From the IMG/VR virus record IMGVR_UViG_3300017963_000192, positions 1-64,000 of that record: a DNA stretch of 64,000 nucleotides. One strand, written 5' to 3'. A model generated the notes under the pieces. It worked only from the letters and a program-made list of their open reading frames with translations. It was not told where the DNA came from and made no database searches. Shown here piece by piece: positions 24,041 through 64,000 of this stretch; position 1 is the stretch's first letter, and each line of letters begins with the position of its first letter. The translations under genes and the position numbers were made by a program.

Positions 24041-24045
24041 TTATG

Positions 24046-34148: not shown

Positions 34149-34182
34149 TATATTATACCTCTTTTTAATATTATTTTTTTAA

Positions 34183-40002: not shown

Positions 40003-40005
40003 TAT

Positions 40006-40131
40006 TTACAATCTCCTATCTATTTTTTCAACAGCAGCCTCAAGCTCTGCGATTCTCTCGAAAAGATTTTTTAATGCATTTTTTGTATTACTGTCTAAAA
40101 CGTTACTTGTTATTTTGGTTAAATCTGCCAT
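40006..40131 (-). CDS. 41-aa coiled-coil peptide, paralog of 35301-35465
   Basis: ..DSNTKNALKNLFERIAELEAAVEKIDRRL*. Confidence 0.7.
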   Translation of the reverse strand: MADLTKITSNVLDSNTKNALKNLFERIAELEAAVEKIDRRL

Positions 40132-40146
40132 ATTCTAAAACCTCTT

Positions 40147-44109: not shown

Positions 44110-44112
44110 AAT

Positions 44113-46401: not shown

Positions 46402-48591
46402 TTATGAATATACCTCGTTATTATCATAGTACGATTCATCATAAATAGCATAGTTTAAAGGGGGTTCTGATAAATCTATCTCTTCTCCTTCAGGATATAG
46501 AATTACTTTATCATCGTTAGCAAATATTACTCGGTACAATATCTCTGGAGGAATAAACTTTTCAAAAAGTAATAAAAGTCTCTCAATATTGTAATCTTCT
46601 ATAGTACTTGAACTTTTACCATATAAAATAATAACTAATGATGTGGATTTTTTAAGTCTCATAAATAGATTATTTATACTGTATTTATCATATAATATTA
46701 GATTTTCAGGCTTTTCTAAACTAGTATAATTGTATAATCTTGGATATATAGAAGTGTTCGGAGAAAACCCACCAATATCTACAAAAAAGTTTGTTTCAGT
46801 AGAAGTTAAAAAATACATATTATCTAAAGATGTCCCTCTATATATCTTATAAAAATCAGTATCAAAAGCATAATCCCACATTAAAACATTTACACCAGTA
46901 TAAACATTAGGCCACCATCTTCTATCCACTCTCAATGATTGAATATCTGTTTCCGCACCATCATTTGTACACGATGAAATCCCGTAATAATAATCATTTC
47001 TAGTTAATCCGGTTGATGTTGATGCAAAGATATAGGAGGTTCTATGGGTGTTATATAAGTCGTCTCTATAGTAAATATAATAATCATCAAAAGATTCGAG
47101 ATTGTTTTTAAAAGCATCTAATAATAATTCTAAACTCCTTTCATAAGACGCATATTCAAATGCTTTAAATACTTCAGAAGCTATAGCTCTAAATATTGTT
47201 TCACTTTCATCCCCTTGTTTATATAATTCAATTAATGGTGCATACATATCAACAAAAGAAGAATATCTCGCTTCAGAAATTGATACGTCTGTTTGAATAG
47301 CTTCAGCCTCTGTTTCAACCTCATCATATTGAACACCTAAAGAATAAAACCAAGAATAAAGATTAATTGTTCTTATACTGTACGGTGCTGATTGTCTTGA
47401 AAATTTTATATTATATTTATCCCTTGCTTGAAATGATACTAACGTTTCTCCTTTATTAAAAGAGTAATTTAAATCAAATTCCCCATAATTTCCTGTTGAA
47501 GTAGTAAAAGAGTAGATATCATTTATAAAAACATCTAATTTACTATTAGATACTCCTAAATATCCTTTTAAATTGTATGGTTGATCCTTAAAATAAGGAA
47601 TTGCGTATGCTGTTTTATCATAGTAATTAGAATCAATAAGAGCTGCTTTTAAAAGTTTCCATTGAGTTTGTTGTAAAACAGCATTATCGGAATTACCTGC
47701 CGATCTTAAATAAGGGTACGCTTGTAGAAAGTCAACAGTATATAAAAAGTATTTTACTTCTTCGCTTGTTTTAGAACCAGTTCCGTTTGATACAACTGTA
47801 TAAATGTATCTCGTATCCGAAACGTAAGTAGTATCAATGTAGCTATTAACAAATGAGTTTCCAACTAAAACAGAACTTGAAGTATCTTCTATGAAATATT
47901 GTAAATTATCCTCTAATATTGAATATTCCTCTGAATTATCACTTGCTTGAGTAACCTTATTAGAATCACTCATAACAAATTCGCCTTCAGTTGTTATTTC
48001 ACCAAACCATATACATCTTTTTATCCTATCTGTAATCCAAAAAGCTTTGCCAACTTCTAGGCTAGAATGAGTTAAAGTACCATCGTCATATGTAACATCA
48101 GAAAGTTGCGTTATATTTTTTCTATAAACAGAAAAGTCAACAAGAGATGAATTTCTTCCTGTACTAGTACTTAATTCATCCCAAGATAGCATTGCATCAT
48201 ATCCATCATATCTTATCATTAAATTTGACGGTTTTGTTGGAGCAATATAAGTAGAGATTACATCAGAATAATTAGACATGTCGTTAGCTACTGAAATGCC
48301 TATCATTTTGATGTAAATCATTCTTCCGTCAGATGCACCAGATGGAATTGAATATGTAAAATAAACAGTACTTCCAGATTCTGTAGTGTAATTGCTTTGG
48401 GTATCTCCTGGCTCATAATGAACAAAGTCTATTAAAAAAGAATCCTCTTCATAAGTAATATCATCATAGCTTTTATAAAGGTAATAACCGCCTATATCTC
48501 CAGTAGGTTTATCAAAAGAAATTACGATAGTTGTAGTTCCGTTCAATAAATCTTGAGAATATAGTGCAATGTTATTAATATCACCTATCAC
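46402..48591 (-). CDS. baseplate wedge-like structural protein
   Basis: FN3-like segments; C-terminal IERLL..FIPP; position in the tail module. Confidence 0.5.
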   Translation of the reverse strand: MIGDINNIALYSQDLLNGTTTIVISFDKPTGDIGGYYLYKSYDDITYEEDSFLIDFVHYEPGDTQSNYTTESGSTVYFTYSIPSGASDGRMIYIKMIGISVANDMSNYSDVISTYIAPTKPSNLMIRYDGYDAMLSWDELSTSTGRNSSLVDFSVYRKNITQLSDVTYDDGTLTHSSLEVGKAFWITDRIKRCIWFGEITTEGEFVMSDSNKVTQASDNSEEYSILEDNLQYFIEDTSSSVLVGNSFVNSYIDTTYVSDTRYIYTVVSNGTGSKTSEEVKYFLYTVDFLQAYPYLRSAGNSDNAVLQQTQWKLLKAALIDSNYYDKTAYAIPYFKDQPYNLKGYLGVSNSKLDVFINDIYSFTTSTGNYGEFDLNYSFNKGETLVSFQARDKYNIKFSRQSAPYSIRTINLYSWFYSLGVQYDEVETEAEAIQTDVSISEARYSSFVDMYAPLIELYKQGDESETIFRAIASEVFKAFEYASYERSLELLLDAFKNNLESFDDYYIYYRDDLYNTHRTSYIFASTSTGLTRNDYYYGISSCTNDGAETDIQSLRVDRRWWPNVYTGVNVLMWDYAFDTDFYKIYRGTSLDNMYFLTSTETNFFVDIGGFSPNTSIYPRLYNYTSLEKPENLILYDKYSINNLFMRLKKSTSLVIILYGKSSSTIEDYNIERLLLLFEKFIPPEILYRVIFANDDKVILYPEGEEIDLSEPPLNYAIYDESYYDNNEVYS

Positions 48592-49589
48592 CTTTTCTTT
48601 CTCCTCTTACGTCTTTTGCTTTTTGGCATTGCAAAAACATCTATCTTATCTATTTTATCTTTACAGTAATGGTATAAGCTATCTTTTAATTTCATATTTG
48701 GCATTCCTGTTAATATACCACCTTCAGTAGAATTGACAGCATCAACTTTTAGTTTTTTTATTAAATCTAAAAAACTATTTCTATAAAAAATGAATGTTTT
48801 ACTTGTCTTTACGAGGTTTCTATTAACGTCTTTTATTTCTGAATCAGACTTGATTTCCATAGCCTTTAATTTTTCTATATGTTCTATCTGTTCAGGACTT
48901 CCAGGTTCAAGAGTATCGTCATATATTTTTCTGTCTAAGAACCCATCACAATAAGCTTTTCCATCAGTATAAGCAAAATCGTATCCCATTAATATTACTT
49001 TACTTGGATTGAAATGAGATACTACCTGTAACATTGTTGCTCCTATAAAAAATCTATTAAAAATAGTTCCAAAAGCCCCAGTAGATTTTGTAAGTTTTTT
49101 CAAAGCATTCCCTTTACTTGAATTTGGTACATCGGCTTGATTAAAGAAAAATATTTTTCCTTTCCAACAATCAAGTATGTCTGGATGGGCTGATGTAGGA
49201 CATATTAGATTTATCTCCGATGTTTCCAAATCATTCCAAAATCTAACAAACATATCTGATGGGTCGATATTTACTACAAAATCTGGTTTAATATCATATT
49301 CTAATAGTTTATATAGTGTAACATCACACGATAAAATAATAACATTTTTTTCATATTTTTTAAGGATATTCACGTTTTTATCTAGTGACGGACCACCTAC
49401 TACAAGGACAAAAGGCTTATTCCTATAAGGCATTGTTCTCTGTAAAAAAGAGAAAGGTCTTGAATTTTCTGAAACAAAAATCTTACTATTTAGATTAGCT
49501 AAATAATTTTTTGTCCACTTTTCTATTATAGGATCATTTCTCGTTACAGTATTTTCTATTCTAACTTCTTTAATATTATTTAAATTCAT
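48588..49589 (-). CDS. Maf/DUF115 (MptE-like) putative nonulosonate transferase
   Basis: VVGGPSLDKN..ILSCD..L..IKPDFVVNID, ILMGYDFAY. Confidence 0.78.
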   Translation of the reverse strand: MNLNNIKEVRIENTVTRNDPIIEKWTKNYLANLNSKIFVSENSRPFSFLQRTMPYRNKPFVLVVGGPSLDKNVNILKKYEKNVIILSCDVTLYKLLEYDIKPDFVVNIDPSDMFVRFWNDLETSEINLICPTSAHPDILDCWKGKIFFFNQADVPNSSKGNALKKLTKSTGAFGTIFNRFFIGATMLQVVSHFNPSKVILMGYDFAYTDGKAYCDGFLDRKIYDDTLEPGSPEQIEHIEKLKAMEIKSDSEIKDVNRNLVKTSKTFIFYRNSFLDLIKKLKVDAVNSTEGGILTGMPNMKLKDSLYHYCKDKIDKIDVFAMPKSKRRKRRKKR

Positions 49590-49604
49590 TTAGTTTTATC
49601 TCCT

Positions 49605-51896
49605 TTAATTGTGTATAAATAAAGTCTTTGGTACTTTTGATATTGCCCCCCTTCCATAAATTTTTAACATTTCTTTTATAAATAACCAATCAGCTTCGTG
49701 AACCCTATGTTTCCATCCTATTTTACGAGCAATCGGTGTTCTTACCATAAAACAACCACAATCAATACTACCAAAAACTAAACGAGTATTTATAAGATTC
49801 CAATCCCAATAGTTATGAAGGCAGTTGCAGTACGCCCCAAGTACTTTACTATTGGTAAAAGGTAGTACCATATATTCCAAGAACTTTGGAATGTAATAAT
49901 TATCAGCACCAGTAAATACTATTAAATCACTCTTTTCAGATACTCTAGTCAATCCATAACTTCTGGGGGTATGACCAACATCGTTATATCTTTTATCTGT
50001 TTTCATTACTTTAATTTTGTTGCTGTGCTTTCTAAAATCATCTAACATTTCTTCTGTTTTTATAGACATTGGACCATCATGAATTAGTAATATTTCATAA
50101 TTAGGATACGTTTGGGAAAGAATTGAGGCTACAGCAACAGGATAACAATCATATATTGGAATTATAAAAGATACTAAACGGGATGTGTCTACAACATCAC
50201 TTTTTTTATTAGCTGATTCAAGTAATGCATTTCTCTGTTGTATGTTAGGTCTTTCTCCTCTAATTTGATTAATATTATTGCGTGTTTCATTACTTATTGC
50301 TGATATTATTTTATTATTATCCATACTTAATGCCGGATAAGAAAAAACAGGAGAAAGATTAAAATTGATATTGTAAAAAGGATCACCCTTTTTTAATATT
50401 TCAGAATGTCTTTGTAGCATATATCTCTTATCTTGTTGTTTTATTTCATTTCTTTCTCTTACTGAAATTATAGAACCTTTATTTTTACTTTCTTTGTGAG
50501 TTCCTCGACATAAAGGAGTAAACACATTATAATATCCTTTCTCGTACAATCTTAAACAAAAATCAACATCAGCAAAATCGATTATTAACTCTTTATCATT
50601 AAATTTATCAATCTCTTCATAAACACTTTTTTTAAACATCATACAAGCATCAGAAACAGAACTTACATTTTGAATATTTATGGCTCTGTTATAATATCCT
50701 GCATAAGAAGATGATTGATTTTTGTATGGGTATATAACTATTTCTGGACCTTTTACAAAATAATTTGTGTGTTGTATGGTATTATTTGGAAATAATAGTT
50801 TACCTCCAACAGCACCTACTTCTGATCTTTGAGAATGATCTAATAAACATTCAATCCAATTTTCATTGATAGGTTCGAAATCATCATGAGTTATTATTAT
50901 GTGTTCTCCTTGAGCAACGTCAACACCAGCATTTAGAAATTTCCCGTAGTTAAAACCTTCATTAGTATAAACTATTTTAGCTTTTCCACTAATTCTATTT
51001 AGCTTATTTTGAGTATCTTCAACATTGCTAACAACAATTAATTCAACATTTCTATAAGTTGATTTTATTAATATTTCTCTAATACATTTTTCTAAATTTA
51101 TTATGTTATCTTTATAAGGAATGATTATACTAACTATAGGATTGCCAATAACATCTCTTTTTAAAGAGTAGTTCCCAAAAGATTTGCCAAAGTCTACTGA
51201 ACCTCCACCATGTCTTCTTTTTAAAGCTGTTTCTATGCAACTTTTCCCTCTCTCCCATACTGCATTTTTAGAGGAATTGTCATGTGTTATAGAAGATTGA
51301 ACGATTCTCCATAGATATAAAACTTTTGAGATATGTGCTACTTTATCAGTTTTTTCAACAACTCTTAATAAGAAATCATGATCCTGTGCTCCATCATAAC
51401 CCCCTCTTAAACCTCCAGCTTGTTCATATAATTCCCTTTTTAACATTACAAAATGGCATATATAATTTTGAGATAATAGCATATCTGGAGAGAAGTCTGG
51501 TTTATAATGCACACCAGATAATTTTCCGTCCATTGACAACAAAGCCTCATCTGAATAAACCATATCAGAATTTGTTTCTCTTAAAGTTTTAACAGATAAT
51601 TCAAGGGCATCTGCGGTGAGTTCGTCATCACTATCTATAAATGCAATATATTCCCCTTTTGAAATCTCAAAAGCTCTTTGTGTAGCCTCGCCAATTCCTA
51701 CATTGGTAGGTAAATTAATTATTTTTATTTTAGGATGGTCAATTGAATTTAAGAAGTTTATAGTAGCATTGTCTGTAGAACCGTCATTTGTAATACACCA
51801 TTCCCATTCCTCATATGTCTGATTCTTTACGGATTCAAGACACATCGCTAACAAGGCTACGTTAGTGTTGTGTATTGGTGTTAAAATAGAAACCAT
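49605..51896 (-). CDS. three-domain GT2 glycosyltransferase
   Basis: Three xSIxxP..D..DxD repeats. Confidence 0.9.
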   Translation of the reverse strand: MVSILTPIHNTNVALLAMCLESVKNQTYEEWEWCITNDGSTDNATINFLNSIDHPKIKIINLPTNVGIGEATQRAFEISKGEYIAFIDSDDELTADALELSVKTLRETNSDMVYSDEALLSMDGKLSGVHYKPDFSPDMLLSQNYICHFVMLKRELYEQAGGLRGGYDGAQDHDFLLRVVEKTDKVAHISKVLYLWRIVQSSITHDNSSKNAVWERGKSCIETALKRRHGGGSVDFGKSFGNYSLKRDVIGNPIVSIIIPYKDNIINLEKCIREILIKSTYRNVELIVVSNVEDTQNKLNRISGKAKIVYTNEGFNYGKFLNAGVDVAQGEHIIITHDDFEPINENWIECLLDHSQRSEVGAVGGKLLFPNNTIQHTNYFVKGPEIVIYPYKNQSSSYAGYYNRAINIQNVSSVSDACMMFKKSVYEEIDKFNDKELIIDFADVDFCLRLYEKGYYNVFTPLCRGTHKESKNKGSIISVRERNEIKQQDKRYMLQRHSEILKKGDPFYNINFNLSPVFSYPALSMDNNKIISAISNETRNNINQIRGERPNIQQRNALLESANKKSDVVDTSRLVSFIIPIYDCYPVAVASILSQTYPNYEILLIHDGPMSIKTEEMLDDFRKHSNKIKVMKTDKRYNDVGHTPRSYGLTRVSEKSDLIVFTGADNYYIPKFLEYMVLPFTNSKVLGAYCNCLHNYWDWNLINTRLVFGSIDCGCFMVRTPIARKIGWKHRVHEADWLFIKEMLKIYGRGAISKVPKTLFIHN

Positions 51897-51898
51897 TA

Positions 51899-52333
51899 TT
51901 ATTCCTTTTTATATAAATTAATAATATCACTACAAATACCTGAACATTTTATGGTAGGAAAAGATATTCTTGATTCTTCTGGAAGAACGCATATAGATTT
52001 TTTTGTTAGACTTTTTCCTGGGAATGTCCAAATATATCCGTTTGATGTTAAGGTAACTTCATCAGTATCGTGAAAAAAACAAATCGTGTTTAATTCAAGA
52101 AGACGGTGTAACGCAATGCTGGTTTTTGCATGACACCATATCCTAGAATCTTTAAGAAAGTCTTCATCAATATCATATTCTGGTCTATCGTGTCCAAGGT
52201 AAAATGTTTTAGTATCATACCAAACATCTACCTCAACATTATATCCAATATCCAGAGCTTCTTTTATATAATCTGGATGATTTTCTCTATCAGATTTTCC
52301 GTTTATGTTTCCTCTATGGGCGATAAGTATCAT
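51899..52333 (-). CDS. GDPD/PI-PLC-like phosphodiesterase
   Basis: IAHRGN, VEVDVW, LGHD, WCHAK. Confidence 0.8.
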   Translation of the reverse strand: MILIAHRGNINGKSDRENHPDYIKEALDIGYNVEVDVWYDTKTFYLGHDRPEYDIDEDFLKDSRIWCHAKTSIALHRLLELNTICFFHDTDEVTLTSNGYIWTFPGKSLTKKSICVLPEESRISFPTIKCSGICSDIINLYKKE

Positions 52334-52904
52334 CTTTAGGCTCCAATATTAGAAATCCCTGGTGTCGGTAATCTTTAATAAAGTTGTGTGTATCAAAATA
52401 TTTATCATAAATAAATTCGTTTGACATTCTAAATCTATCAATGAAATCTTGTTCCCATTTAAGTTCGTAATCACCATCTTCATATAATTGAAGATCATCT
52501 ATTATAAAAACATCTTTACACTTTTTTCTTGTTTCATAAATTAAGTTGATTTCCCATTCTAAAGGGAATTTTAGATTAAATTCGATATTGTCATAATAGC
52601 TCCCTAATTGGAAATCAGCACCAGGAAAATGGGCATCAAGCCAAAATAAAATAGTATCATTTTTATCTGTTTCTTTAAGTATCTTTTTGAGACCATCGAT
52701 AGAAGTTGCATTAATTAGTTTAAGTCTGTTTGATGCAAATTTGTTTTTACACTCATTATATAGTTGAGTATGTATCTCGATAGAATAAAGTTTATCGAAC
52801 CTGTATTTCAAAGCGTGTTCTATTCCAGTTCCTTTTCCTGTTCCAGTTTCTACAAAGATATTACAATTATACTTTGATAAATCATGTAGATATAATTCAC
52901 CCAT
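52314..52904 (-). CDS. SAM methyltransferase-like protein
   Basis: FVETGTGKG, SIEI, FWLDAH, IIDD. Confidence 0.75.
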   Translation of the reverse strand: MGELYLHDLSKYNCNIFVETGTGKGTGIEHALKYRFDKLYSIEIHTQLYNECKNKFASNRLKLINATSIDGLKKILKETDKNDTILFWLDAHFPGADFQLGSYYDNIEFNLKFPLEWEINLIYETRKKCKDVFIIDDLQLYEDGDYELKWEQDFIDRFRMSNEFIYDKYFDTHNFIKDYRHQGFLILEPKDDTYRP

Positions 52905-53985
52905 CTAAATACTTATCCCCTATCACAGATGGTATTTTTACTACTGTTATTATAGCATCAGTAATTGCTTTAAAATCAGTTGAATCACCTGGTTCTAGAT
53001 AAATTATATCATCTTCTTTATATCTAATACCATCCATTTCAACCTCACCAGATACTATTACACTTATTTCAACTGCTACTTTATGAATATGTCTCGCCTC
53101 AATATCTTCAGCTTTGTATCTTTGAATACCAACTTCGAATTTGTTATTTATAAACAATGATGGTAGAAATGCACCTAAAATCCATCCTCTTGTAAAATCT
53201 TTGACATTATGTATTTTTTTTGTTTTTATTTTTTCCCATTTTCGTTTAAGATGATACGTATCGGTTGATTTTAATATATTTCCAAAATATTCTGCGTTTT
53301 TACCATACAACGACCATCTGTAGATTGATTTTTGTTTGTGTATTAATCCCTTTCCTATTTTATTTGGGTTTATTTCTTTAAAGATATGTCTTATCCATTC
53401 TAGTAAATTTTTTGTACCATTAAAATCTATTGCTACTTTCCCTCTACTATTTAATTTGATAGATCCATCACCGTCACAATAACCTTTAATATACGATAAT
53501 GTGTTAATACCTTCAATATTAGGTGGTTTTAATATTAATGATTTGTTATTGACAATATTAAAATTATTTTTCAGATCATCTATTATTTTACGGCATTTAA
53601 TTAACAATCTTACTTGATCACTTCCTTTTTTAATTTTTCTTTTTTTAATAAACCCATCATATTTTATAGATTTTTTAAAAGATAACAATAAATCCGAATC
53701 TTTTTCAGATATACTTATTTCTAAAGTTTTCCCATCTTTTCTTATATAACCATCAGCAGCGATAAAACCTGCCCAATACGAATTTTCTATGTTTGGTTTC
53801 TCAAAAAAACAAGTATCTAAATTATATATTCTATAAGGTTTGTATTCTAAACCTAACTCAACTATTTTAGTTCGTATAGATCGCCAACCTCTTTCTAATT
53901 TGTTAATTAAAAACAATCTGTCTTTCATATTATTCTTTTTAAGAAAGTCTATCTCAAAATTTGACCATCTTTTATATTTCCTCAC
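52897..53985 (-). CDS. LAGLIDADG homing endonuclease fused to a cupin
   Basis: YWAGFIAADG and YIKGYCDGDG; C-terminal DFTRGW..H.HKVA.E..GD..D. Confidence 0.85.
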   Translation of the reverse strand: MRKYKRWSNFEIDFLKKNNMKDRLFLINKLERGWRSIRTKIVELGLEYKPYRIYNLDTCFFEKPNIENSYWAGFIAADGYIRKDGKTLEISISEKDSDLLLSFKKSIKYDGFIKKRKIKKGSDQVRLLIKCRKIIDDLKNNFNIVNNKSLILKPPNIEGINTLSYIKGYCDGDGSIKLNSRGKVAIDFNGTKNLLEWIRHIFKEINPNKIGKGLIHKQKSIYRWSLYGKNAEYFGNILKSTDTYHLKRKWEKIKTKKIHNVKDFTRGWILGAFLPSLFINNKFEVGIQRYKAEDIEARHIHKVAVEISVIVSGEVEMDGIRYKEDDIIYLEPGDSTDFKAITDAIITVVKIPSVIGDKYLDG

Positions 53986-53986
53986 A

Positions 53987-54754: not shown

Positions 54755-54758
54755 ATCA

Positions 54759-56112: not shown

Positions 56113-56740
56113 TCCTTTTGTCTAACGAATCAATTTTATTAATAACATTTTCTATTGTAACTTCTGTTGGGTCAGCTACCTCTAAAACATTAGCTCCAGA
56201 CATTCTAGCAGAGATTATCCCTTTTTCAGAATCTTCTACAATTAAGGTTTCATTTTTTTCTAGGTTTAATTTATTCATTGCCAAAGTATAACAGTAAGGA
56301 TTGGGTTTTGGTTTATCTTTGAATATTTCGTTACCAAGAACTAAATCCATATATTCAAGTTGTCCTGTTACTTTCAACGCTAGGTTTATAGTTTTTATTA
56401 TTGAATTAGAAACACAAGCCAATAAGTACCCTTTCTTTTTTAGAAATTTATGCAATTCAATCTTTTGTTCATCAATACTTAAATTGGTTTCTATTCTAAT
56501 AAAAGTTTTATCTTGTTTATAAGACCAAACTTTTTCAACATCATTGGGATGTATTATACCACGATTGACTAACATTGCTAATTTTGTTCTAGTAGGTAAA
56601 CCGTTATAGTATTTCCAAAACTCGTTCCCAACAACTTTATAGTCACAAACCTCCGCTAATGCATCATTAAAAGAATCTCGATGAACTTCTACTAATTCGC
56701 AAAGAACTCCATCCATATCGAATATAACACACTTAATCAT
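56105..56740 (-). CDS. HAD-family sugar phosphatase/mutase
   Basis: IFDMDGVL, KP.P, IVEDS..G. Confidence 0.88.
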   Translation of the reverse strand: MIKCVIFDMDGVLCELVEVHRDSFNDALAEVCDYKVVGNEFWKYYNGLPTRTKLAMLVNRGIIHPNDVEKVWSYKQDKTFIRIETNLSIDEQKIELHKFLKKKGYLLACVSNSIIKTINLALKVTGQLEYMDLVLGNEIFKDKPKPNPYCYTLAMNKLNLEKNETLIVEDSEKGIISARMSGANVLEVADPTEVTIENVINKIDSLDKRSV

Positions 56741-57404
56741 TTTTATTATATTCTATTCCATCACCATAATCATATGCATTTTTTGCTAAAATAAAAACAT
56801 CTCTACTAAAAGGTTCTCCTACATATTTTGACAACTCATCTCCCAAACACTGTTCTGTACAAAAATCATTTGTTACTTCTATGTTGTAAAATACCCTATT
56901 TCTAAAAGCAAATTCCCCATCAATTATAAAGAATTGGGGCATAAAGTCGCTTATACCCTCATATTGAAGTCTCCCTTCAACAACATCTGGCGGATTGTCT
57001 ATTGTTGCATGGAATCTCTGACCAATTGCTTGTGAAACACCTGCAACTTTTTTCTCTCTTATCATCCTTGTATAAAGTCTTTCCAATCCTAGTATGTCTG
57101 AAATGTAAGTATCACCTGTTAAAGCTACGACATATTTAAACTCATTAGGCTGTTCATATAAAATAGTGAAAGCACGATTATAGTTTCTTGTAACGGAATT
57201 TGCTGCTAATTTATATGGGTTAATAGTACCGCCTAAATTAGGGAAAACTTCGAACACGTCATATCCAGTAATTGTTTGACCAGAATCTGATTGGATAACA
57301 ATAACAAAACTGTCATCTCTGTAATGATGTTTAATCATATTAATGTTATGTTGCACAACATCTTTTTCATTATACATTGTTATACAAAAAGCTACTTTTT
57401 TCAC
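56733..57404 (-). CDS. glycosyltransferase-like protein
   Basis: FCITMYN.., ALTGD; cluster context. Confidence 0.5.
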   Translation of the reverse strand: MKKVAFCITMYNEKDVVQHNINMIKHHYRDDSFVIVIQSDSGQTITGYDVFEVFPNLGGTINPYKLAANSVTRNYNRAFTILYEQPNEFKYVVALTGDTYISDILGLERLYTRMIREKKVAGVSQAIGQRFHATIDNPPDVVEGRLQYEGISDFMPQFFIIDGEFAFRNRVFYNIEVTNDFCTEQCLGDELSKYVGEPFSRDVFILAKNAYDYGDGIEYNKND

Positions 57405-57414
57405 AAACGTCCCT

Positions 57415-58491
57415 CTACAAATACAAATTTGATAATAAATCTTTATTATCTTTAATCCACGCTATTATTTTTTCATATCCTTCTTCTAAAGTAATAGAAG
57501 GTTTCCACCCTAATACATTTTGAATTTTTCTGATGTCGGATATGTAAATACATTGATCAGATTTTCTTGGTTCTTGTATTTGTTTTGTTTTTAATTTTTT
57601 ATTATACATTTTTTCCATAAGATTGGTTGCTTCAATAAGAGACATTGTACATTCGTGACCACCACCAATATTAAAAACCTCTCCAGCAATTTTATCAATA
57701 TTATTTATCTCCATTTCAATCAACTTGCAAATGTCGTCTATGAACAAAACGTCTCTGACTTGTTTTCCTTTCCATCCAATATATGTTATAGGCAAATCAA
57801 ATTCTGTAGCTATTGCCCACCAAGCTACCCATCCTTGAGCGACTTTGCCCCACTGTCTTGAACCCGCCAAGCAGGAGAACCTGTTGACAACAGTTTTTAC
57901 ACCAAAGGCATCACTGTATTCTTGGCAAGCTAAGTCTGACATGACTTTACTCATACCATAGACGGAATGTTGTCCCCCATCTATACTAAACTCTTCTGAA
58001 AAACCAAATTTTGGATTCCAACCTTTAAAATCTAATTTTTTAGCCTGATCTTCCGTCATTTCATCCGCCCACTCATAACGAGTATCTGTTTCGTTCATTG
58101 GATATGCGTTTACTTTTTCACCGCTATAGACTTTGTTTGTTGACCAGAATATAACAGTAGCATTGTTTTCTCTTGCTATTTCTAACACGTTTACTAAACC
58201 CAACGTATTATTTGAGAAATCATAATAAGGATTGTCGTAACCATCTATAGCAGATGGTTGGGCACTACATTCACATATAGCATCTATGTTTTCAATTCCT
58301 ACAAAATCCTCTTTGCATCTTATATCTCCGTGTAAGAACTTTATACCTTTCTTTTTAAAATCGTTTAAGTTGTACTCAGCACCTCTTCTTACAAGATTGT
58401 CCATTGCAATTATTTCGTGACCTTTATCACGTAGATAGAAAGCCAAATTAGCTCCAATAAAACCTGCTCCACCAGTAATTAATATTTTCAT
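57415..58491 (-). CDS. NDP-sugar epimerase (CDP-paratose 2-epimerase-like SDR)
   Basis: TGGAGFIG, STNKVY, YGMSK, QWG..QGW, QVRD. Confidence 0.88.
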   Translation of the reverse strand: MKILITGGAGFIGANLAFYLRDKGHEIIAMDNLVRRGAEYNLNDFKKKGIKFLHGDIRCKEDFVGIENIDAICECSAQPSAIDGYDNPYYDFSNNTLGLVNVLEIARENNATVIFWSTNKVYSGEKVNAYPMNETDTRYEWADEMTEDQAKKLDFKGWNPKFGFSEEFSIDGGQHSVYGMSKVMSDLACQEYSDAFGVKTVVNRFSCLAGSRQWGKVAQGWVAWWAIATEFDLPITYIGWKGKQVRDVLFIDDICKLIEMEINNIDKIAGEVFNIGGGHECTMSLIEATNLMEKMYNKKLKTKQIQEPRKSDQCIYISDIRKIQNVLGWKPSITLEEGYEKIIAWIKDNKDLLSNLYL

Positions 58492-59057
58492 TTTATAACT
58501 CCTATTAATATTTTGTTAGCACACCCAAAAGGATTATCATAATAACCAGCAATCATATCTGGATCAAAATCCTGTTCCCATACGCTGAGTGATATTCTTT
58601 TCATAAAATATTTTTCATCTATTTTAAAATTCTCATTCATCATTTGTTCATCTAATATTTTATTAAATCCTAAAGGTATTGTGAATACAAATTCACCACC
58701 TTCCTTTAAAAGGTTTTGCTTTATATGGTGTACTGTTCTTATAACTTTAGTCTCATCCTTTTCTTCTGGAGGTTCATAACCTATATGCTCTAATGTTGAT
58801 ATGCTTACTATAAAATCATATTTACTAATAGAATGATAATTTATTATATCCTCATTAATACAATATTTAGCAGTATCGTATTTATCTACAATGTCGTGAT
58901 TTGATGAACAAAAATTTACCAATACATTACCTATCTCAAGAATGTTCTTTCCTTTATATTCACGTAAATACTCTTTAATTATAGGAATTTCTACTCTCCT
59001 ATCAGGATTTGGAGTATCAGCATATTCGTATTGTTTATTGTTAAATTTAAATATCAT
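58488..59057 (-). CDS. methyltransferase-like (DUF268-like) protein
   Basis: RRVEIP, LEIG, SISTLEHIG. Confidence 0.65.
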   Translation of the reverse strand: MIFKFNNKQYEYADTPNPDRRVEIPIIKEYLREYKGKNILEIGNVLVNFCSSNHDIVDKYDTAKYCINEDIINYHSISKYDFIVSISTLEHIGYEPPEEKDETKVIRTVHHIKQNLLKEGGEFVFTIPLGFNKILDEQMMNENFKIDEKYFMKRISLSVWEQDFDPDMIAGYYDNPFGCANKILIGVIK

Positions 59058-60010
59058 AACAACTTTTCATATTCCTCAACAATTCTATTAGCTATATTTT
59101 TATAAGACCATTTATCTAATGCAAACTGTCTTACTTCTTTTGACCTTTCCTCTAAAGATTCTGGATTGTCTTTGTATTTTCCAATACATTTATCTATATC
59201 TTCTTTAGTATTAACTACTTCAAATGGAAAGATGTCTGTTTGATGAAATTCTTTAAAGACTTGTTCAAAACAACCATCAGCACTTGTCATTGTTGGTATT
59301 CCGAGTGCTATGTTCTCTACTGTAGTCATTCCATGAAAACCTCTCCATAAAGCATCGAAACCCATAGTGCATTGTTTCTTTATCTCTATGATTCTTTTAT
59401 GAGGTACATCGGTAACGATATGATATTGAATAGCCATACCGTATTTACGCAAAGCCCATTTAAGCTCTTCGGTATTTTTATTATTACCACCACCAGTTGG
59501 AAAATGCCCTATGATTATTTGTTTTCTATCTATATCTGATGGTGTATAATCTTCTGATAATTCATTTACCACATCTGGTATATACACACAATCTTTATAT
59601 ATTTCAGTCGCTTGTGGTATAGAAGAAAATATTGCATTATATCCTGTATTTTCTCTTCTATTCCAAGTATCTTTTTTTTCAGCACGTTCACTCCATCTCC
59701 CCATAAAACTATTATAATCGTGAAATATTTTAACTTTATCTTTAACTAGTTCATTCCAATCAAAACTAAAATCGTGAGTGCTTATATAGTTATGGTCAGC
59801 AGAACAAAAATGAAGTATGTCAGATTCTTCTATTATACTAATAAATTCATCTTTATTATAATTTTCTGGACCTAAATCCAAATCATCATAAAATGTTTTT
59901 ACTGCTCTGAAATGTCTTGCATCCCAATCAGTATGCATATTAATAGCCTCTGCTTGCTTATAAGAACATCCCGCAGCATCCCAAGCCATATTAATAAAAA
60001 ATGTTTTCAT
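59054..60010 (-). CDS. GT-B fold glycosyltransferase
   Basis: GHFPT..K, HG..VE..ALG.P. Confidence 0.65.
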   Translation of the reverse strand: MKTFFINMAWDAAGCSYKQAEAINMHTDWDARHFRAVKTFYDDLDLGPENYNKDEFISIIEESDILHFCSADHNYISTHDFSFDWNELVKDKVKIFHDYNSFMGRWSERAEKKDTWNRRENTGYNAIFSSIPQATEIYKDCVYIPDVVNELSEDYTPSDIDRKQIIIGHFPTGGGNNKNTEELKWALRKYGMAIQYHIVTDVPHKRIIEIKKQCTMGFDALWRGFHGMTTVENIALGIPTMTSADGCFEQVFKEFHQTDIFPFEVVNTKEDIDKCIGKYKDNPESLEERSKEVRQFALDKWSYKNIANRIVEEYEKLL

Positions 60011-60900
60011 CCTAGTAACCCCTTAAATATTTCATATAGTTTTTCATTGAAATTTTCATAAGTTAAATTTATTACCTTATTCCTTCTTTTTAAATATTGA
60101 TTTTCTATATCTTTAAAGATTGCCATTAACGATGTTAGTGTTCCTGCGGAAAACATATATTCAATATTAAACTCTGGAATAAGTCCAACATCAGATGAAA
60201 TAATAGGAATACCACAAGACATAGCTTCAAGGGGTGCGACCGGTCCACCTTCCCACAAAGATGGAACTAAAAGATAATCTATTTTCTCATACAATACACG
60301 ATGTTCTACATTATGGTATTCCTCTGGAGTGTAATTGTAAGTCTCATACCTAATATTTTTTTCTTGTAATCGACTTATAACAGATTCCCACCCTCGTCCA
60401 CAGAAGATGAACTTGAAATTTTCAAGGTTTATTCCAGAGTCTACAAAATCTTCCATAAAGTGAAGCCCTTTACCTACAACTTCACCGTTTTGGAATATAC
60501 CGATAGATATCGTAGGCTTGAATTTGTGGACTTCAACAGGTGATGTTAGGTTAAAGTTCTTATCTTTTGGATAACCCATATCTAAGAATTGTTTTAAACT
60601 TCTTTTAGATTGATGAATCCAGGCATCTAGTTGTCTGAACTTATTAAAGTCGTGACCTATATCTATACTGTGACTTTCTGGACTGTTTTCGTGTATGTGT
60701 GTGACGTACCCAACATCTAAGGCGTTTGTTTTGTTGAAAGGAAGGAACGTGTTATAACAAACATAGAAATTAACATCAACATCATTTTTAGGTTCTAAAG
60801 ATATAGTTTGTTCCATTTCTGTTTTATTATATTCCACAATTTTATCTGACCAAAATTTCTTTATCCAATTACCTTCTGTTACTATATTAACTTTCATCAC
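60007..60900 (-). CDS. GT4 glycosyltransferase
   Basis: VPSLWEGGP..LEAMSCG.PIISSDVG. Confidence 0.88.
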   Translation of the reverse strand: MMKVNIVTEGNWIKKFWSDKIVEYNKTEMEQTISLEPKNDVDVNFYVCYNTFLPFNKTNALDVGYVTHIHENSPESHSIDIGHDFNKFRQLDAWIHQSKRSLKQFLDMGYPKDKNFNLTSPVEVHKFKPTISIGIFQNGEVVGKGLHFMEDFVDSGINLENFKFIFCGRGWESVISRLQEKNIRYETYNYTPEEYHNVEHRVLYEKIDYLLVPSLWEGGPVAPLEAMSCGIPIISSDVGLIPEFNIEYMFSAGTLTSLMAIFKDIENQYLKRRNKVINLTYENFNEKLYEIFKGLLG

Positions 60901-61573
60901 AATCTCCTAATTTTTCTATTAATGGATAAATCATTTTACCGTCTGGATGACCTTCATCACAATAATTGTAATGGTCAACTTCGGCTATTTCTTTTGATTC
61001 TTCTTCTAATACAGTAGCACCTAACTCTAACATATAATAATAAGAACCAATAGCAAAAGGATGTGCTATTGAAAGATTACGATATTTTACACTCTCTTCT
61101 ATAAATGAATCAAAATCTGGCATTACATCTTTGTTTATTTTTATTATTCTTATTTCTTGACCACTACCATTTAAACAATAATCATTTTCAGCATCAATTA
61201 ATGCTTTTAAATATTTTTCAGAACATATGCAATCTCCCTGGAATAGAAGAAAAGCCCCACCTTTTACTTCATCTAAACCTAATTTAAAAGAAACAAAAGG
61301 ATCGAAATCAACAAGTTGTGCCGTATCATTGTGTACAAATTTGACTTTTAGATTTTTTTCATCTATAAAATTTATAACTTTTTCTTTTTGATATCCAACA
61401 ACAACAATAATATTATCTATTCCAAATTTATTCAAAAGTTTTATATTTCTCTCTAAAATAACTTCACCATTGATATGGTGAAGACATTTAGGTTTGCCTC
61501 CAGTAGGAAACCCTGTCCAACTAACATTGGCAGTTATTCCTGCTACAAGAATTATTGCATATTTTGGTTTCAT
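60887..61573 (-). CDS. NTP transferase (LicC-like cytidylyltransferase)
   Basis: IILVAG..KPKCL..ILER..IIVVVGY. Confidence 0.75.
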   Translation of the reverse strand: MKPKYAIILVAGITANVSWTGFPTGGKPKCLHHINGEVILERNIKLLNKFGIDNIIVVVGYQKEKVINFIDEKNLKVKFVHNDTAQLVDFDPFVSFKLGLDEVKGGAFLLFQGDCICSEKYLKALIDAENDYCLNGSGQEIRIIKINKDVMPDFDSFIEESVKYRNLSIAHPFAIGSYYYMLELGATVLEEESKEIAEVDHYNYCDEGHPDGKMIYPLIEKLGDCDES

Positions 61574-62331
61574 TTAACACCACTAACAACAACGAATTTC
61601 CATCTCATAAAAACATCACCATCTTTTTCTTGTATCTTATATACTTTTTTAAATTCATCAGAAGCTTTTGTTGTATGTAAATTATAAATTTCTTCTATAT
61701 CATCTTCATATAAATCAGAATTATTTAACCAATTAAGAAGACTTACATCTTCCATTATAAAATATTTAATATGAACATCTTTAAATCCAGCATCTATGAA
61801 ATAATTAGACAATTCTTCTGCTGACATTATGTTTCTAACTGGTTCTTTTATTTTAAATATTTCTACATATTCATCTATTATATTATGAGAAAAAGGAACA
61901 CCCTCACAAATTAGCATTATTCCAGAATCATTAAGTATTTTATAACATGTTTTGAATACGTTTTCTAAATCATCTAAATGATGAAAACACATCCTAGAAT
62001 AAATAACATCAAATTTTATATAATCAAAATAGATTAACCCTTTCCCTGAACAATCAACTTTATGTAATTCAACATCCTTTGTATTTAAAAGATATTTACA
62101 TTTATTTAGCATTTCTTCACAATTATCAACACCATAATAATTATGTCTTTTATCAGTAGATTCTATTAATTGTTTTAGAACAATTCCAGTACCACATCCT
62201 ATATCCAAAAAGTTAAGTCTACCCAATGGTTTATTATCTATAATAGAATACAAAAAGAAACTTTCAAATTCTTTGTTTTTTATCCATTCCAACTTTTCAT
62301 AATTGGTTGATCTTACTTTCCAGTTAGTCAT
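61570..62331 (-). CDS. class I SAM methyltransferase
   Basis: LDIGCGTG, GVD, CFHHL. Confidence 0.85.
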   Translation of the reverse strand: MTNWKVRSTNYEKLEWIKNKEFESFFLYSIIDNKPLGRLNFLDIGCGTGIVLKQLIESTDKRHNYYGVDNCEEMLNKCKYLLNTKDVELHKVDCSGKGLIYFDYIKFDVIYSRMCFHHLDDLENVFKTCYKILNDSGIMLICEGVPFSHNIIDEYVEIFKIKEPVRNIMSAEELSNYFIDAGFKDVHIKYFIMEDVSLLNWLNNSDLYEDDIEEIYNLHTTKASDEFKKVYKIQEKDGDVFMRWKFVVVSGVK

Positions 62332-62907
62332 TTATCCTCTTGTTTCAGTAGTTGAATTATTAAAATCGTAATAATACAAAACTTTGTCTATTCTAACCTC
62401 ATTTTTTATATCTAAACAAGCTCGTTTGACCCAATCAATATCTTCACCATAATTCTTATCTATATATGTATGTTTCTTTGCTATAGAGGATTTCCAAACC
62501 ATTGTATGAGCGGGCTTACCTCTCCACTGATTTCCTGTTTGATTATATTCATAATTTATGCTATATTTAGAATAGGTTTGATTATCTTTATCTCCATCAA
62601 TTGTAGTTATACAATCAAACACAATACAATCCGCATCTGGATTTTTATTTATACAATCAAGGATACTAATTATATAATCATCTGCTATTCTATCATCATC
62701 ATCTACAAATGTTAAAAAATCTCCTTGTGCCAACTTCAATAATTCATTTCTTTTTTCACCAACAGTTCTCTTCTTGTTGTCATAAAATCCTATAATTTCA
62801 ACATCATCTCTATCTCTTATTTGTTTATTTATAGAATCAAGCAAATCTGGATAGAAGTTTCGTATCCGAGATGGAACTGTTGCGATAAGTATAGATAATT
62901 TAATCAT
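62332..62907 (-). CDS. GT2 glycosyltransferase
   Basis: LSILIAT..R, G.KRN, FVDDDD, GED. Confidence 0.85.
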   Translation of the reverse strand: MIKLSILIATVPSRIRNFYPDLLDSINKQIRDRDDVEIIGFYDNKKRTVGEKRNELLKLAQGDFLTFVDDDDRIADDYIISILDCINKNPDADCIVFDCITTIDGDKDNQTYSKYSINYEYNQTGNQWRGKPAHTMVWKSSIAKKHTYIDKNYGEDIDWVKRACLDIKNEVRIDKVLYYYDFNNSTTETRG

Positions 62908-63626
62908 TTTTTAAACAACTTCCCTGCTAAAGCATGAGCCTTGGCATCATATTCTTTTCCCATTCTTCCCTGAAAACCATAATCGCCATTGGTGGTTTGT
63001 TCTCCGTGTATTCTGTATGATGTCAAAACTTCTGGAACTTTATAGTATAAATAATACTGTGATATTCTAACAAGCATTTCGTAATCTTCGCAAGCGACAA
63101 ATTCCTCATTAAACATGCCAACTTTGTCAAATACGCTTTTATGAACCACCATATTACTCCACATCCCAAAGTAACTTCCTATAACAAATTGTTGTTGTTC
63201 CTCTAATGTGTTAAATACTGGTTCTACATAATGTGGATCACCTATTACATCATCTTCTCCAATAGTTTGCCAATCAGCATAAATAACCATTGCTTCAGGA
63301 TGTTCTTTAGCAAAAGCAACTTGCTTTTCTAATTTGTAAGATTTCCACATATCATCAGAACTTAATCCAGCCCACCAATCTCCAGTCATATTTCTAATTC
63401 CGGTATTTAGAGCACCGCAAGTTTTCTTGTTTTCCTGATGAATGATGGTTAGTCTTTCGTTCTTTTTAAATTCTTCTAAACAATCCAATGTTTCTTTTCT
63501 TGTAGAACCATCATCAACAACTATTATTTCATACGGCTTGTAGGACTGATTCAAAATACTGTTAATACTTTTTTCCAGAAAATCTGGACGAATATTGTAT
63601 ACTGGTGAAACTACTGATATTTTCAT
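62904..63626 (-). CDS. GT2 glycosyltransferase
   Basis: SVVSPVYN, VVDDGS, LSSDD, EDY. Confidence 0.9.
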   Translation of the reverse strand: MKISVVSPVYNIRPDFLEKSINSILNQSYKPYEIIVVDDGSTRKETLDCLEEFKKNERLTIIHQENKKTCGALNTGIRNMTGDWWAGLSSDDMWKSYKLEKQVAFAKEHPEAMVIYADWQTIGEDDVIGDPHYVEPVFNTLEEQQQFVIGSYFGMWSNMVVHKSVFDKVGMFNEEFVACEDYEMLVRISQYYLYYKVPEVLTSYRIHGEQTTNGDYGFQGRMGKEYDAKAHALAGKLFKK

Positions 63627-64000
63627 TATAAAAAATCCTCGTGTTTAATTTTTAATATTAGTTTATCCAATACAAAATTGTAATCATTATAGTAACATTT
63701 CACACACTGATTTCCATTAAAATATTTTTGTTTTTGATATATCTTTTTTAAATCTTGAATAGGCCCCATAGCCATACTATCACCACAACTTAAATCTGGT
63801 TCTTTTCTAGCATATTGCACACCGCAATTATGAAGAAGTATCCCAAATGAACTATAGAACATGTTTGTATTTTCAACTTGAATATCAAATAAGTCATCTG
63901 ACATTATTTTTTCAATTTTTTTAACTGGAACAAACATTAATCCATCTTTTTTATAAAACCCCAAAGCTCGTTTAGGACTTCGCCTAGTAACATCTAAATA
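63626..64000 (-). CDS. 3' end of an intein-containing radical SAM/SPASM-like protein (partial)
   Basis: Frame open to the window edge; FDIQV..LHN|CG intein end at 63827; CVKCYY. Confidence 0.7.
   Translation of the reverse strand, partial: YLDVTRRSPKRALGFYKKDGLMFVPVKKIEKIMSDDLFDIQVENTNMFYSSFGILLHNCGVQYARKEPDLSCGDSMAMGPIQDLKKIYQKQKYFNGNQCVKCYYNDYNFVLDKLILKIKHEDFL

Follow-up and report, generated by a model that had tools for sequence, protein, structure and literature searches.

A giant phage carries an exchangeable island of glycan-building genes within its baseplate operon

A giant phage from marine sediment carries 22 soluble sugar-making and sugar-attaching genes inside its tail-baseplate operon, and related phages keep the two enzymes which frame this island while swapping the genes between them. 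This suggests that the phage coats its own tail proteins with a variable glycan, much as bacteria vary their surface sugars. The window analysed here comprises the first 64 kb (64,000 nucleotides) of a 217.7-kb virus record (IMGVR_UViG_3300017963_000192). A literature search returned no published description of such an island.

Gene content and boundaries of the island

The initial annotation had described 19 co-oriented glycan-building genes coupled to the baseplate/tail operon, and this observation was confirmed, the island being in fact larger than reported. Open reading frame listing gave 18 complete minus-strand ORFs from 48588 to 63626 and a 19th, radical SAM, which runs off the end of the window. 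Of the 19 in-window junctions 13 overlap by 1-20 nt and none has a gap above 15 nt. In the complete record, however, the island continues 4.9 kb beyond the window, adding a GT2, a second SDR and a GT-B, so that it comprises 22 co-oriented minus-strand genes over 20.3 kb (48588 to genome 68885), in which 13 of 22 junctions overlap and no gap exceeds 76 nt. Promoter-like and terminator-like matches inside the island were not enriched over shuffled sequences. Altogether the island encodes 11 glycosyltransferase domains, two sugar-nucleotidyltransferases, two SDR dehydratase/epimerases, a HAD, a cupin, a radical SAM enzyme and 3-5 methyltransferases.

The last gene of the island (48588..49589, minus strand, as are all genes of the island and of the operon around it) encodes a short Maf-like glycosyltransferase of 333 aa with a polybasic C-terminal tail. 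It matched MptE-like/Maf PF01973 with an E value of 2.5e-33 and only the central region of PseD, while profile hits to the central domain of long Mafs were obtained at about E 1e-30. Its AF2 model (pLDDT 87) gave Maf 5mu5 as the top PDB fold match (E 2.6e-8), followed by archaeal HPPK (MptE-type) and then CMP-sugar sialyltransferases, and the family-invariant D109 aligned with catalytic E324 of 5mu5. In order of rising coordinates it is followed by a triple-domain GT2 of 763 aa (49605..51896; Glycos_transf_2, three stretches, E 3.6e-52), whose nearest solved relatives are the soluble two-domain chondroitin synthase and heparosan synthase. The 144-aa protein at 51899..52333 had been called a phosphodiesterase in the initial annotation, which was not confirmed, as it showed a GDPD-like N-terminal motif only, with no Pfam or NCBIfam hit, and matched phrog_34507, of unknown function; an orthologue with 55% identity lies in the cassette shared with a relative designated G002. 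The 196-aa protein at 52314..52904 is possibly a class-I methyltransferase, on the basis of a glycine-rich SAM-motif-like N-terminus and Erm hits at E ~0.003 only, and has a G002 orthologue at 62% identity. The cupin is real, but it forms only the C-terminal ~105 aa (aa 257-361) of ORF 52897..53985, where it is fused in frame to a LAGLIDADG homing endonuclease (aa ~37-254; LAGLIDADG_3, E 1.2e-8), a fusion which the initial annotation had missed. A PHROG endonuclease matched aa 37-254 and phrog_24762 aa 259-360, and while the cupin of G002 is a free-standing 106-aa ORF, no start codon is visible at the junction here.

Next come a sugar-1-phosphate nucleotidyltransferase of 255 aa (53987..54754; NTP_transferase, E 1.2e-13), whose best NCBIfam match was RmlA-like but below the cut-off, two SAM methyltransferases of 215 and 239 aa (54759..56112; Methyltransf_23, _11 and _25), and a HAD hydrolase or mutase of the beta-phosphoglucomutase family of 211 aa (56105..56740; HAD_2, E 2.8e-22; PGMB-YQAB subfamily, E 1.7e-19, below the cut-off). 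The 223-aa protein at 56733..57404 is a probable GT-A glycosyltransferase, supported only by a weak GT2 hit (E 0.009), and is conserved in G002 at 53% identity. It is followed by an SDR NDP-sugar 4,6-dehydratase/epimerase of 358 aa (57415..58491; Epimerase, E 4.7e-33; GDP_Man_Dehyd, E 1.5e-31), with a best NCBIfam match, below the cut-off, that was dTDP-glucose 4,6-dehydratase-like, and by a probable methyltransferase of 189 aa (58488..59057; weak Methyltransf_23 hit, E 3e-4). Two GT-B (GT1/GT4-type) glycosyltransferases of 318 and 297 aa (59054..60900; Glycos_transf_1, E 2.6e-5 and 2.1e-12), a second nucleotidyltransferase of 228 aa (60887..61573; NTP_transf_3, E 2.6e-8), a SAM methyltransferase of 253 aa (61570..62331; Methyltransf_23, E 2.9e-18) and two GT2 glycosyltransferases of 191 and 240 aa (62332..63626; Glycos_transf_2, E 8.9e-9 and 1e-30) complete the in-window set, together with the 3' end of the radical SAM gene (63626..64000).

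The full radical SAM gene (genome 63626-65707, 693 aa) carries an intein, also missed initially, which spans aa 259-627, whereas the intein-less orthologue in G002 is 319 aa; Radical_SAM, Intein_splicing and LAGLIDADG_3 hits were obtained. Beyond it lie a GT2 (65710-66486), an SDR (66500-67567; Epimerase hit) and the conserved GT-B frame gene (67644-68885). The 413-aa protein's own Atlas cluster (97% viral) has a GT4/GT1-like model with TM ~0.8. These are followed by Baseplate_J, gp6-like (68952-70412), and a gp25-like gene (70414-70860), so that the island lies inside the baseplate module rather than upstream of it. It had been set beforehand that export or polymerase genes lying upstream would speak for a surface polysaccharide locus; on examination, upstream were more soluble sugar genes and then Baseplate_J, not exporters. 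No ORF of the island has a multi-span hydrophobic profile, and the island has no membrane protein, priming transferase, flippase or polymerase. In all 217 kb we found no Bac_transf and no WecA-type primer, the only polytopic protein being of the YhhN family.

On the other side, a conserved 729-aa virion-module protein (46402..48591) lies immediately downstream, its GTG start overlapping the Maf-like stop by 4 nt. It is a candidate acceptor. It gave no Pfam, PHROG or PDB hit, only weak Atlas leads to P2 gpI and T4 gp7, and a poor AF2 model (pLDDT 56), but full-length orthologues at 34-49% identity occur in 8 of 10 clade loci. Three large fibre-like proteins of 761, 1320 and 1509 aa (35473..46398), also candidate acceptors, complete the operon. 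The 761-aa protein has tail-fibre PHROG hits and a CBM_5_12 hit just below the cut-off, and its N-terminus matches a relative's 507-aa protein that has a weak Phage_fiber_2 hit.

Conserved frame and exchanged cargo in related phages

We then compared ten related loci, two of them from complete 236-253-kb genomes. All ten keep gp25-like, Baseplate_J, GT-B, cargo and Maf-like genes, with the GT-B at one end and the short Maf-like transferase at the other, and in 6 loci the Maf-like gene directly precedes the 729-aa orthologue. The cargo in between, on the other hand, is replaced wholesale or shared between distant relatives. The related locus L014 has colinear orthologues of the Maf-like, 729-, 761- and 1320-aa proteins at 46-50% identity, yet none of its 10 upstream cargo ORFs matched those of the present phage at E 1e-8. 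The relative G001 has the closest core (Baseplate_J 62%, GT-B 64%, Maf-like 55%) and a different 6-kb cargo, while G002 has a distant core (28-46%) yet shares at least 17 cargo genes at 45-72% identity. Enzymes often evolve more slowly than structural proteins, which could explain part of this contrast in G002, and its cargo lies after the 729-aa gene rather than before it, so adjacency to that gene is not strict.

Furthermore, short Maf-like genes also sit beside capsid genes in two unrelated phage groups, often with a phage NeuB. In 51 more distant viral loci the Maf-like gene lies between a probable capsid gene and the SU10-type adaptor (about 30 loci) or directly upstream of a Mu-gpT-like capsid gene, and a NeuB homologue lies within 10 kb in 18 of the 51. 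Maf-like genes sit in virion modules in three unrelated phage groups.

Proposed function and comparison with known systems

The best explanation, which we hold with moderate confidence, is that the island is a self-contained, cytoplasmic, late-expressed glycosylation system for the phage's own tail-end proteins, i.e., the baseplate and fibre proteins encoded around it. What the analysis itself shows is the position of the island, the lack of membrane functions, the conserved frame with its swapped cargo, the Maf-like identity of the last enzyme and the recurrence of such genes beside virion genes; late expression, the activity of the enzymes, the donor, the acceptor and virion glycosylation as such are inferred, since no glycoprotein, transcript or virion proteome has been observed and no RNA run was listed. 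In this view, a beta-phosphoglucomutase-like HAD and two nucleotidyltransferases would make NDP-sugars from host sugar phosphates, which two SDR dehydratase/epimerases, a cupin, a radical SAM enzyme and 3-5 methyltransferases would tailor into deoxy and methylated sugars, although all steps of the pathway, including those below, rest on family-level annotation with hits below the curated equivalog cut-offs. Eleven glycosyltransferase domains, among them the three-domain GT2 which resembles lipid-independent polymerising synthases, would build the glycan directly on a soluble protein acceptor. The two transferases conserved across the clade, the GT-B next to Baseplate_J and the short Maf-like enzyme next to the 729-aa protein, would do the protein-proximal or capping steps, and the cargo between them would set the glycan type. 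The Maf-like enzyme has a predicted sialyltransferase-like fold and probably uses a CMP-activated ulosonic acid, which a lone KdsB/PseF-like cytidylyltransferase elsewhere in the genome (122588-123304) could supply from a host-made sugar; Maf enzymes O-glycosylate Ser/Thr and accept Kdo as well as nonulosonic acids (bioRxiv 10.1101/2020.06.03.131540). However, this donor is uncertain, as no NeuB is present in this clade and G001 lacks the cytidylyltransferase. As to the acceptor, no Ser/Thr-rich tail stood out in any protein, and a complex prediction of the Maf-like enzyme with the 729-aa protein gave no answer. Exchange of the cargo between phage lineages, in the way O-antigen or capsule loci are exchanged between bacteria, would give the virion variable glycan 'serotypes'.

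The interpretation offered initially was partly supported: of its two alternatives, a cytoplasmic pathway decorating virion proteins is the reading best supported by the comparative data, whereas remodelling of host flagellin or LPS is not supported. PF01973 and Maf homology, and the fact that characterised Mafs act on flagellin, might argue for modification of host flagellin, pilin or S-layer protein, but we consider this quite unlikely, because the phage protein is only the ~300-aa catalytic core and lacks the N- and C-terminal domains of the 550-660-aa flagellin Mafs, no flagellin gene, NeuB or other nonulosonic-acid synthesis gene was found nearby, and in three phage groups its constant neighbours are virion genes. 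It is also unlikely, though somewhat less so, that the island makes a capsule-like or other surface polymer on a host lipid acceptor and relies on host exporters, remodelling the infected cell surface for superinfection exclusion or receptor masking, for example. The resemblance of the three-domain GT2 to the chondroitin and heparosan synthases of ABC-dependent capsules, the KdsB-like cytidylyltransferase and the YhhN-family membrane protein speak for it, and a DUF481 protein, DUF481 being linked to outer membranes, hints at a diderm host. But no primer transferase, KpsC/S-type enzyme, ABC transporter, Wzx or Wzy was found in 217 kb, no membrane machinery for LPS or O-antigen work exists there, the frame genes are conserved next to virion genes across the clade, and in the late baseplate/fibre operon such remodelling would come too late to help.

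Glycosylation of phage DNA with a complex glycan as protection against restriction, as in hypermodified T-even-like phages, appears the least likely. Phage DNA glycosyltransferase sets are also diverse and exchangeable (as cited in PMC12619734), and one relative's cargo has a weak deaminase-like gene, but no ThyA-family dNMP hydroxymethylase is present in this record or in two complete relatives, and the island lies in the tail operon and not among replication genes. Eleven GT domains plus deoxysugar tailoring also far exceed the known DNA-sugar systems. It remains a doubtful possibility that the island is selfish or auxiliary cargo parked in a permissive gap of the structural operon, making a soluble product such as a nucleotide-sugar or small glycoside with no link to the virion. 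The intein and homing endonuclease, which are signs of mobile DNA, and the mosaic cargo favour this, while the two framing transferases are conserved at 45-64% identity together with the baseplate genes across the clade, both complete genomes examined have a cargo there, and eleven transferase domains imply a polymeric or oligomeric product on an acceptor.

Among known systems, the Maf (motility-associated factor) flagellin nonulosonic-acid O-glycosyltransferases, such as Magnetospirillum Maf (PDB 5mu5) and the Geobacillus and Clostridium Mafs, share with the phage protein the PF01973 catalytic domain, the sialyltransferase-like architecture, with 5mu5 as best fold match, and an invariant acidic residue equivalent to catalytic E324. 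The phage protein, at 333 aa against 550-660 aa, is the central domain only, and it is next to virion genes and not to flagellin or Pse/Leg/Neu genes. In the virion glycosylation of actinobacteriophages (Freeman et al. 2023, as cited in PMC12619734 and PMC11256854) phage-encoded glycosyltransferases likewise sit beside structural genes, with virion proteins as the proposed target. Those systems, however, are reported as a few GT genes acting on capsid and tail-tube subunits, while here 22 genes with their own nucleotide-sugar synthesis and tailoring, a Maf-like enzyme and hypervariable cargo are placed in the baseplate/fibre module. The autonomous glycosylation of giant eukaryotic viruses (chloroviruses, mimiviruses; review PMC4691112) is similar to the proposed phage system in its way of working, as virus-encoded sugar-nucleotide pathways, multi-domain soluble glycosyltransferases and methyltransferases decorate virion proteins without the host's membrane glycosylation route, but the virus realm and host domain differ, and here the island is framed by tail genes and exchanged as a cassette. 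Bacterial O-antigen and capsule loci similarly have conserved flanks enclosing hypervariable, laterally exchanged sugar-synthesis and transferase cargo, while the phage island has no initiating phosphoglycosyltransferase, flippase, polymerase or exporter, and no membrane protein at all.

Extent and position of the sugar-gene island

The window is bases 1-64000 of the 217,703-bp IMG/VR record analyzed here, which is linear, is rated 88% complete by CheckV, has a GC content of about 30% and carries nearly all of its genes on the minus strand. Transcription therefore runs from high to low coordinates, and the flagged region is thus the upstream part of a long operon which leaves the window at its right edge. 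The same DNA was found in a 111,658-bp twin contig, 100% identical, which was the only match returned by single-protein scans of IMG/VR, and the related loci were obtained with an alignment query. Among the sequencing runs listed for this sequence there was no RNA run, while DNA runs placed it in a sediment metagenome from 2018 and a seawater metagenome from 2021. Among cultured phages, a tblastn search with the Maf-like protein against 50,697 phage records found nothing, and Baseplate_J, the baseplate wedge protein, matched only Bacillus phage G (30% identity) and Virus Rctr197k (25% identity). Shine-Dalgarno-like sequences upstream of many starts hint at a bacterial host, possibly a diderm one in view of a DUF481 protein, DUF481 being an outer-membrane family. 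This protein lies just downstream of the fibre genes (30589-31389 and 33777-34839, minus strand), together with an M23 peptidase and a small two-span protein that may be a lysis pair. The window also holds a tRNA island of 13 genes (17794-24263, minus strand) for Lys x2, Phe, Ile, Leu x4, Asp, Met, Glu, Ala and Ser, to which Rfam adds one borderline extra tRNA match at 23720-23771.

The initial annotation had claimed 19 co-oriented sugar genes with overlapping stops and starts, and this observation held. We found 18 complete ORFs plus one truncated ORF between 48588 and 64000, all on the minus strand; 13 of the 19 in-window junctions overlap, no gap exceeds 15 nt, and the stop of the Maf-like gene overlaps the GTG start of the next gene by 4 nt. 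Pfam confirmed almost every label that had been proposed, namely a PF01973 Maf-like protein, a 763-aa protein with three GT2 stretches, further GT2 proteins, two GT-B proteins, an SDR dehydratase/epimerase, two nucleotidyltransferases, three solid and two weak methyltransferases, a HAD and a radical SAM enzyme. The proposed cupin is real, but it forms only the C-terminal third of ORF 52897-53985 (minus strand), where a LAGLIDADG homing endonuclease is fused in frame to the start of the cupin gene with no start codon visible at the junction, whereas in the complete relative G002 (236 kb) the cupin is a free 106-aa ORF. We considered whether this ORF contains an intein and rejected the idea, since the endonuclease part precedes the whole cupin and there is no N-extein. 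The proposed phosphodiesterase (51899-52333) rests on an N-terminal motif alone. Promoter-like and terminator-like matches were not enriched over shuffles. Every NCBIfam hit fell below the curated cut-off, and we therefore name no specific sugar.

Furthermore, reading past the window end through the whole record showed that the island continues with the rest of the radical SAM gene (63626-65707), a GT2 (65710-66486), a second SDR (66500-67567) and a 413-aa protein (67644-68885); the predicted structure of this last protein's own, 97%-viral, Atlas cluster matches GT4/GT1 models at TM about 0.8. The radical SAM gene carries a canonical intein with a LAGLIDADG endonuclease (aa 259-627, beginning with Cys, ending in His-Asn and followed by Cys), while the G002 orthologue is 319 aa and has no intein. 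A third selfish element lies outside the island at 26901-28613 (minus strand), where a DUF5662 protein is interrupted by an intein-splicing domain that also contains a C2H2 zinc finger. Immediately upstream of the island lie Baseplate_J (68952-70412; PHROG 'baseplate wedge subunit', E 2e-27) and a gp25-like sheath initiator. Downstream of the Maf-like gene lie a 729-aa protein with no recognisable family, a 761-aa protein with tail-fibre PHROG hits, two proteins of 1320 and 1509 aa, and the M23 peptidase and small two-span protein. The island is thus 22 genes and 20.3 kb, and it splits the otherwise canonical gp25 - gp6 - next-wedge-protein - fibre order of contractile tails, although the assignment of the 729-aa protein to the gpI/gp7 position rests on synteny and weak Atlas leads only. 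The structural model of the 729-aa protein was poor (pLDDT 56, pTM 0.32) and was not used for fold search, and profile searches with this protein against PDB and Pfam found nothing meaningful.

It had been set beforehand that export or polymerase genes upstream would speak against the initial annotation; none were seen there, and this check therefore did not refute it. A hydropathy scan found no multi-span ORF in the island, and both families of initiating phosphoglycosyltransferase (PF02397 and PF00953) are absent from the 217 kb, while the controls were detected. The only polytopic membrane protein in the whole record, which is 88% complete, is a YhhN-family protein (genome 100606-101256, minus strand; L003:17606-18256 in our numbering of loci). 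Similarly, PF00303, the ThyA family to which a dNMP hydroxymethylase for DNA base glycosylation of the T-even type would belong, is absent here and in two complete relatives.

The Maf-like protein and its predicted fold

The Maf-like gene (48588-49589, minus strand) encodes a protein of 333 aa with a PF01973 (MAF_flag10/MptE-like) catalytic domain (E 2.5e-33), which matches only the central part of PseD (positions 216-447 of 640). An AlphaFold model built on 22 homologues was confident (pLDDT 87, pTM 0.85), and its best PDB match was the Magnetospirillum Maf 5mu5 (E 2.6e-8, TM 0.51 by query), followed by archaeal HPPK (MptE) and then by the CMP-sugar sialyltransferases ST8SiaIII, CstII and Cst-I. 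A profile of the short family found 98 cluster representatives at E <= 1e-30, of which the top ~45 are 270-365 aa, and below them come canonical Mafs of 550-660 aa, which are hit at about E 1e-30 over their central ~270 aa and align only over their residues ~200-480. The acidic residue E324, which Sulzenbacher et al. found essential in 5mu5 (as quoted in bioRxiv 10.1101/2020.06.03.131540), aligns with D109, which is invariant in the family; the sequence alignment stops before the second essential residue, D415, for which the invariant D204 is only a candidate. The protein is therefore a Maf catalytic core without the flanking N- and C-terminal domains of flagellin Mafs, and we describe it, from sequence and predicted fold, as working like a Maf without filing it as a flagellin Maf. 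The possibility that it is an archaeal HPPK (MptE) was rejected, since it is longer than MptE, its best fold match is Maf, and it is invariably embedded among sugar and virion genes. The protein ends in a run of Lys and Arg residues (48588-48630, minus strand), and the family consensus keeps this basic tail, which might serve for nucleic-acid or acidic-protein binding, or for packaging.

The genomic company of this gene also differs from that of flagellin Mafs, as its neighbours are baseplate and fibre genes and no NeuB exists in the record or in two complete relatives. We found only a lone CTP_transf_3 cytidylyltransferase, KdsB/PseF-like (E 7e-29), at genome 122588-123304 (minus strand; locus L005:9588-10304), which sits among genes of unknown function 74 kb from the island. 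A counterpart exists in G002, which shares the cargo, but not in G001, the other complete relative (253 kb). Mafs can transfer Kdo as well, as shown in the same preprint (bioRxiv 10.1101/2020.06.03.131540). To look for a possible acceptor we scanned for Ser/Thr-rich tracts and found no outstanding candidate, structural proteins being generally 17-23% Ser+Thr against a genome mean of 11%. A complex prediction of the Maf-like protein with residues 1-660 of the 729-aa protein scored 0.00, a result which counts neither for nor against their interaction.

Related loci and other phage groups

The short Maf-like family has about 86 close members at 40-63% identity, nearly all metagenomic and several on contigs of 147-253 kb. 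We compared ten loci, in which ORFs were called mechanically, and found that they share a frame of a gp25-like gene, Baseplate_J, the 413-aa GT-B, a variable block of sugar genes and the Maf-like gene, with the 729-aa orthologue following directly in six loci. The variable block differs radically between loci, with RmlA-D-like genes, an aminotransferase and an ATP-grasp enzyme in one locus, asparagine-synthase-like, hexapeptide acetyltransferase and oxidoreductase genes in another, and TPP enzyme and several radical SAM genes in a third. Three comparisons with this record carry the argument. In the related locus L014 the orthologues of Maf, 729, 761 and 1320 are colinear and 46-50% identical, while none of its ten upstream cargo ORFs matches at E 1e-8. 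G001, which has terminal repeats, has the closest core (Baseplate_J 62%, GT-B 64%, 729 49%, Maf 55%) but a different 6-kb cargo. On the other hand, G002 has a distant core (28-46%) yet shares at least 17 cargo genes at 45-72%, and its cargo lies after the 729 gene. This pattern indicates cassette exchange on a conserved frame, as read from these identities rather than from a formal tree-incongruence test, and slower evolution of enzymes could explain part of the G002 contrast. In three relatives the conserved GT-B is duplicated and the second copy lies directly beside the 729-aa gene (L012:12423-13628, L017:12064-13287 and L074:12198-13439), which may link that transferase to that protein. At the end of G002 (L016:10904-14265), about 3.3 kb after the Maf-like gene has no sizeable ORF and no tRNA, up to the terminal repeat end of the genome.

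Fifty-one further IMG/VR loci carry more distant PF01973 genes, with labels that come from phmmer transfer plus three spot checks with Pfam. In about thirty of these the order is a P22/SU10-type portal, a 284-aa gene, a 307-aa gene, a 160-aa gene, the Maf-like gene, small connector-sized genes and then the SU10 adaptor, and in about a dozen one or two Maf-like genes lie directly upstream of a Mu-gpT-like major capsid gene. Eighteen of the 51 have a NeuB homologue within 10 kb, one of them at E 1.8e-78. In two other phage groups (loci L018-L067, e.g. L030:9899-10927, L025:9947-11790 and L019:3802-4857) distant Maf-like genes sit next to probable capsid genes, sometimes in tandem or twice per genome, and NeuB and B12-radical-SAM genes are often nearby. 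Three unrelated phage groups therefore place this enzyme inside virion modules, and this is the strongest indirect support for a virion acceptor.

Interpretation and comparison with known systems

Combined together, these results are best explained by late, cytoplasmic glycosylation of tail-end virion proteins, a reading which we consider somewhat more likely than not. In this view the two conserved transferases would handle the protein-proximal or capping steps and the cargo would set the glycan type. The analysis itself established the gene content at family level, the lack of membrane steps, the position in the operon, the conserved frame with its mosaic cargo and the Maf-like fold of the model, while everything functional is inferred from sequence, including the acceptor, the donor sugars, the transfer of a CMP-ulosonic acid to Ser/Thr, the covalent attachment of a glycan to virion proteins, the order of steps, their timing and the biological purpose. 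The interpretation given in the initial annotation, a cytoplasmic pathway decorating virion proteins or else remodelling host flagellin or LPS, was supported in part.

The other explanations are all unlikely on present evidence. A surface polymer exported by host machinery would require steps for which neither primer nor exporter was found, and the genes sit in the operon inferred to be late; against an unrelated parked cargo speak the framing transferases, which are conserved with the baseplate genes, and the presence of a cargo in both complete genomes examined. Modification of host flagellin, pilin or S-layer protein is less likely still, since the Maf-like protein lacks the flanking domains and its constant neighbours are virion genes, and DNA glycosylation is the least likely, as no hydroxymethylase is present here or in two complete relatives. 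A wider reading, possible but doubtful, is that short Maf-like transferases are a widespread, unrecognised class of phage virion O-glycosyltransferases occurring in the jumbo myovirus clade, in SU10/P22-portal podovirus-like phages and in phages with Mu-gpT-type capsids. In the jumbo clade they would anchor an O-antigen-like, laterally exchanged 'virion serotype locus', whose glycan would not merely shield the particle but would take part in host recognition or evasion at the baseplate.

If the interpretation of virion glycosylation holds, virion surfaces would have glycan 'serotypes' under diversifying selection, which would affect adsorption, stability and recognition by hosts or grazers, and the short Maf-like enzymes would be compact protein O-glycosyltransferases of biotechnological interest. 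Our literature searches, which covered open-access text only, found no description of a glycan island inside a baseplate module or of Maf-like virion enzymes. The known comparators are the autonomous glycosylation of giant viruses and the virion glycosylation of actinobacteriophages (Freeman et al. 2023, as cited in PMC12619734 and PMC11256854). With phage-encoded glycosyltransferases lying in the virion structural module, between Baseplate_J and the 729-aa and fibre genes and in the same frame in ten loci, the island resembles the latter. However, phage virion glycosylation is known from a handful of actinobacteriophages that carry a few transferase genes, whereas here a phage devotes about 9% of its genome to what appears, from family-level annotation, to be a complete sugar factory placed at the heart of the host-recognition machinery, and relatives treat it as a swappable cassette between fixed anchor enzymes. 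Capsid-adjacent Maf-like genes, often with a phage NeuB, occur in two other phage groups, so glycan-coated virions may be much more common in environmental phages than is recognised.
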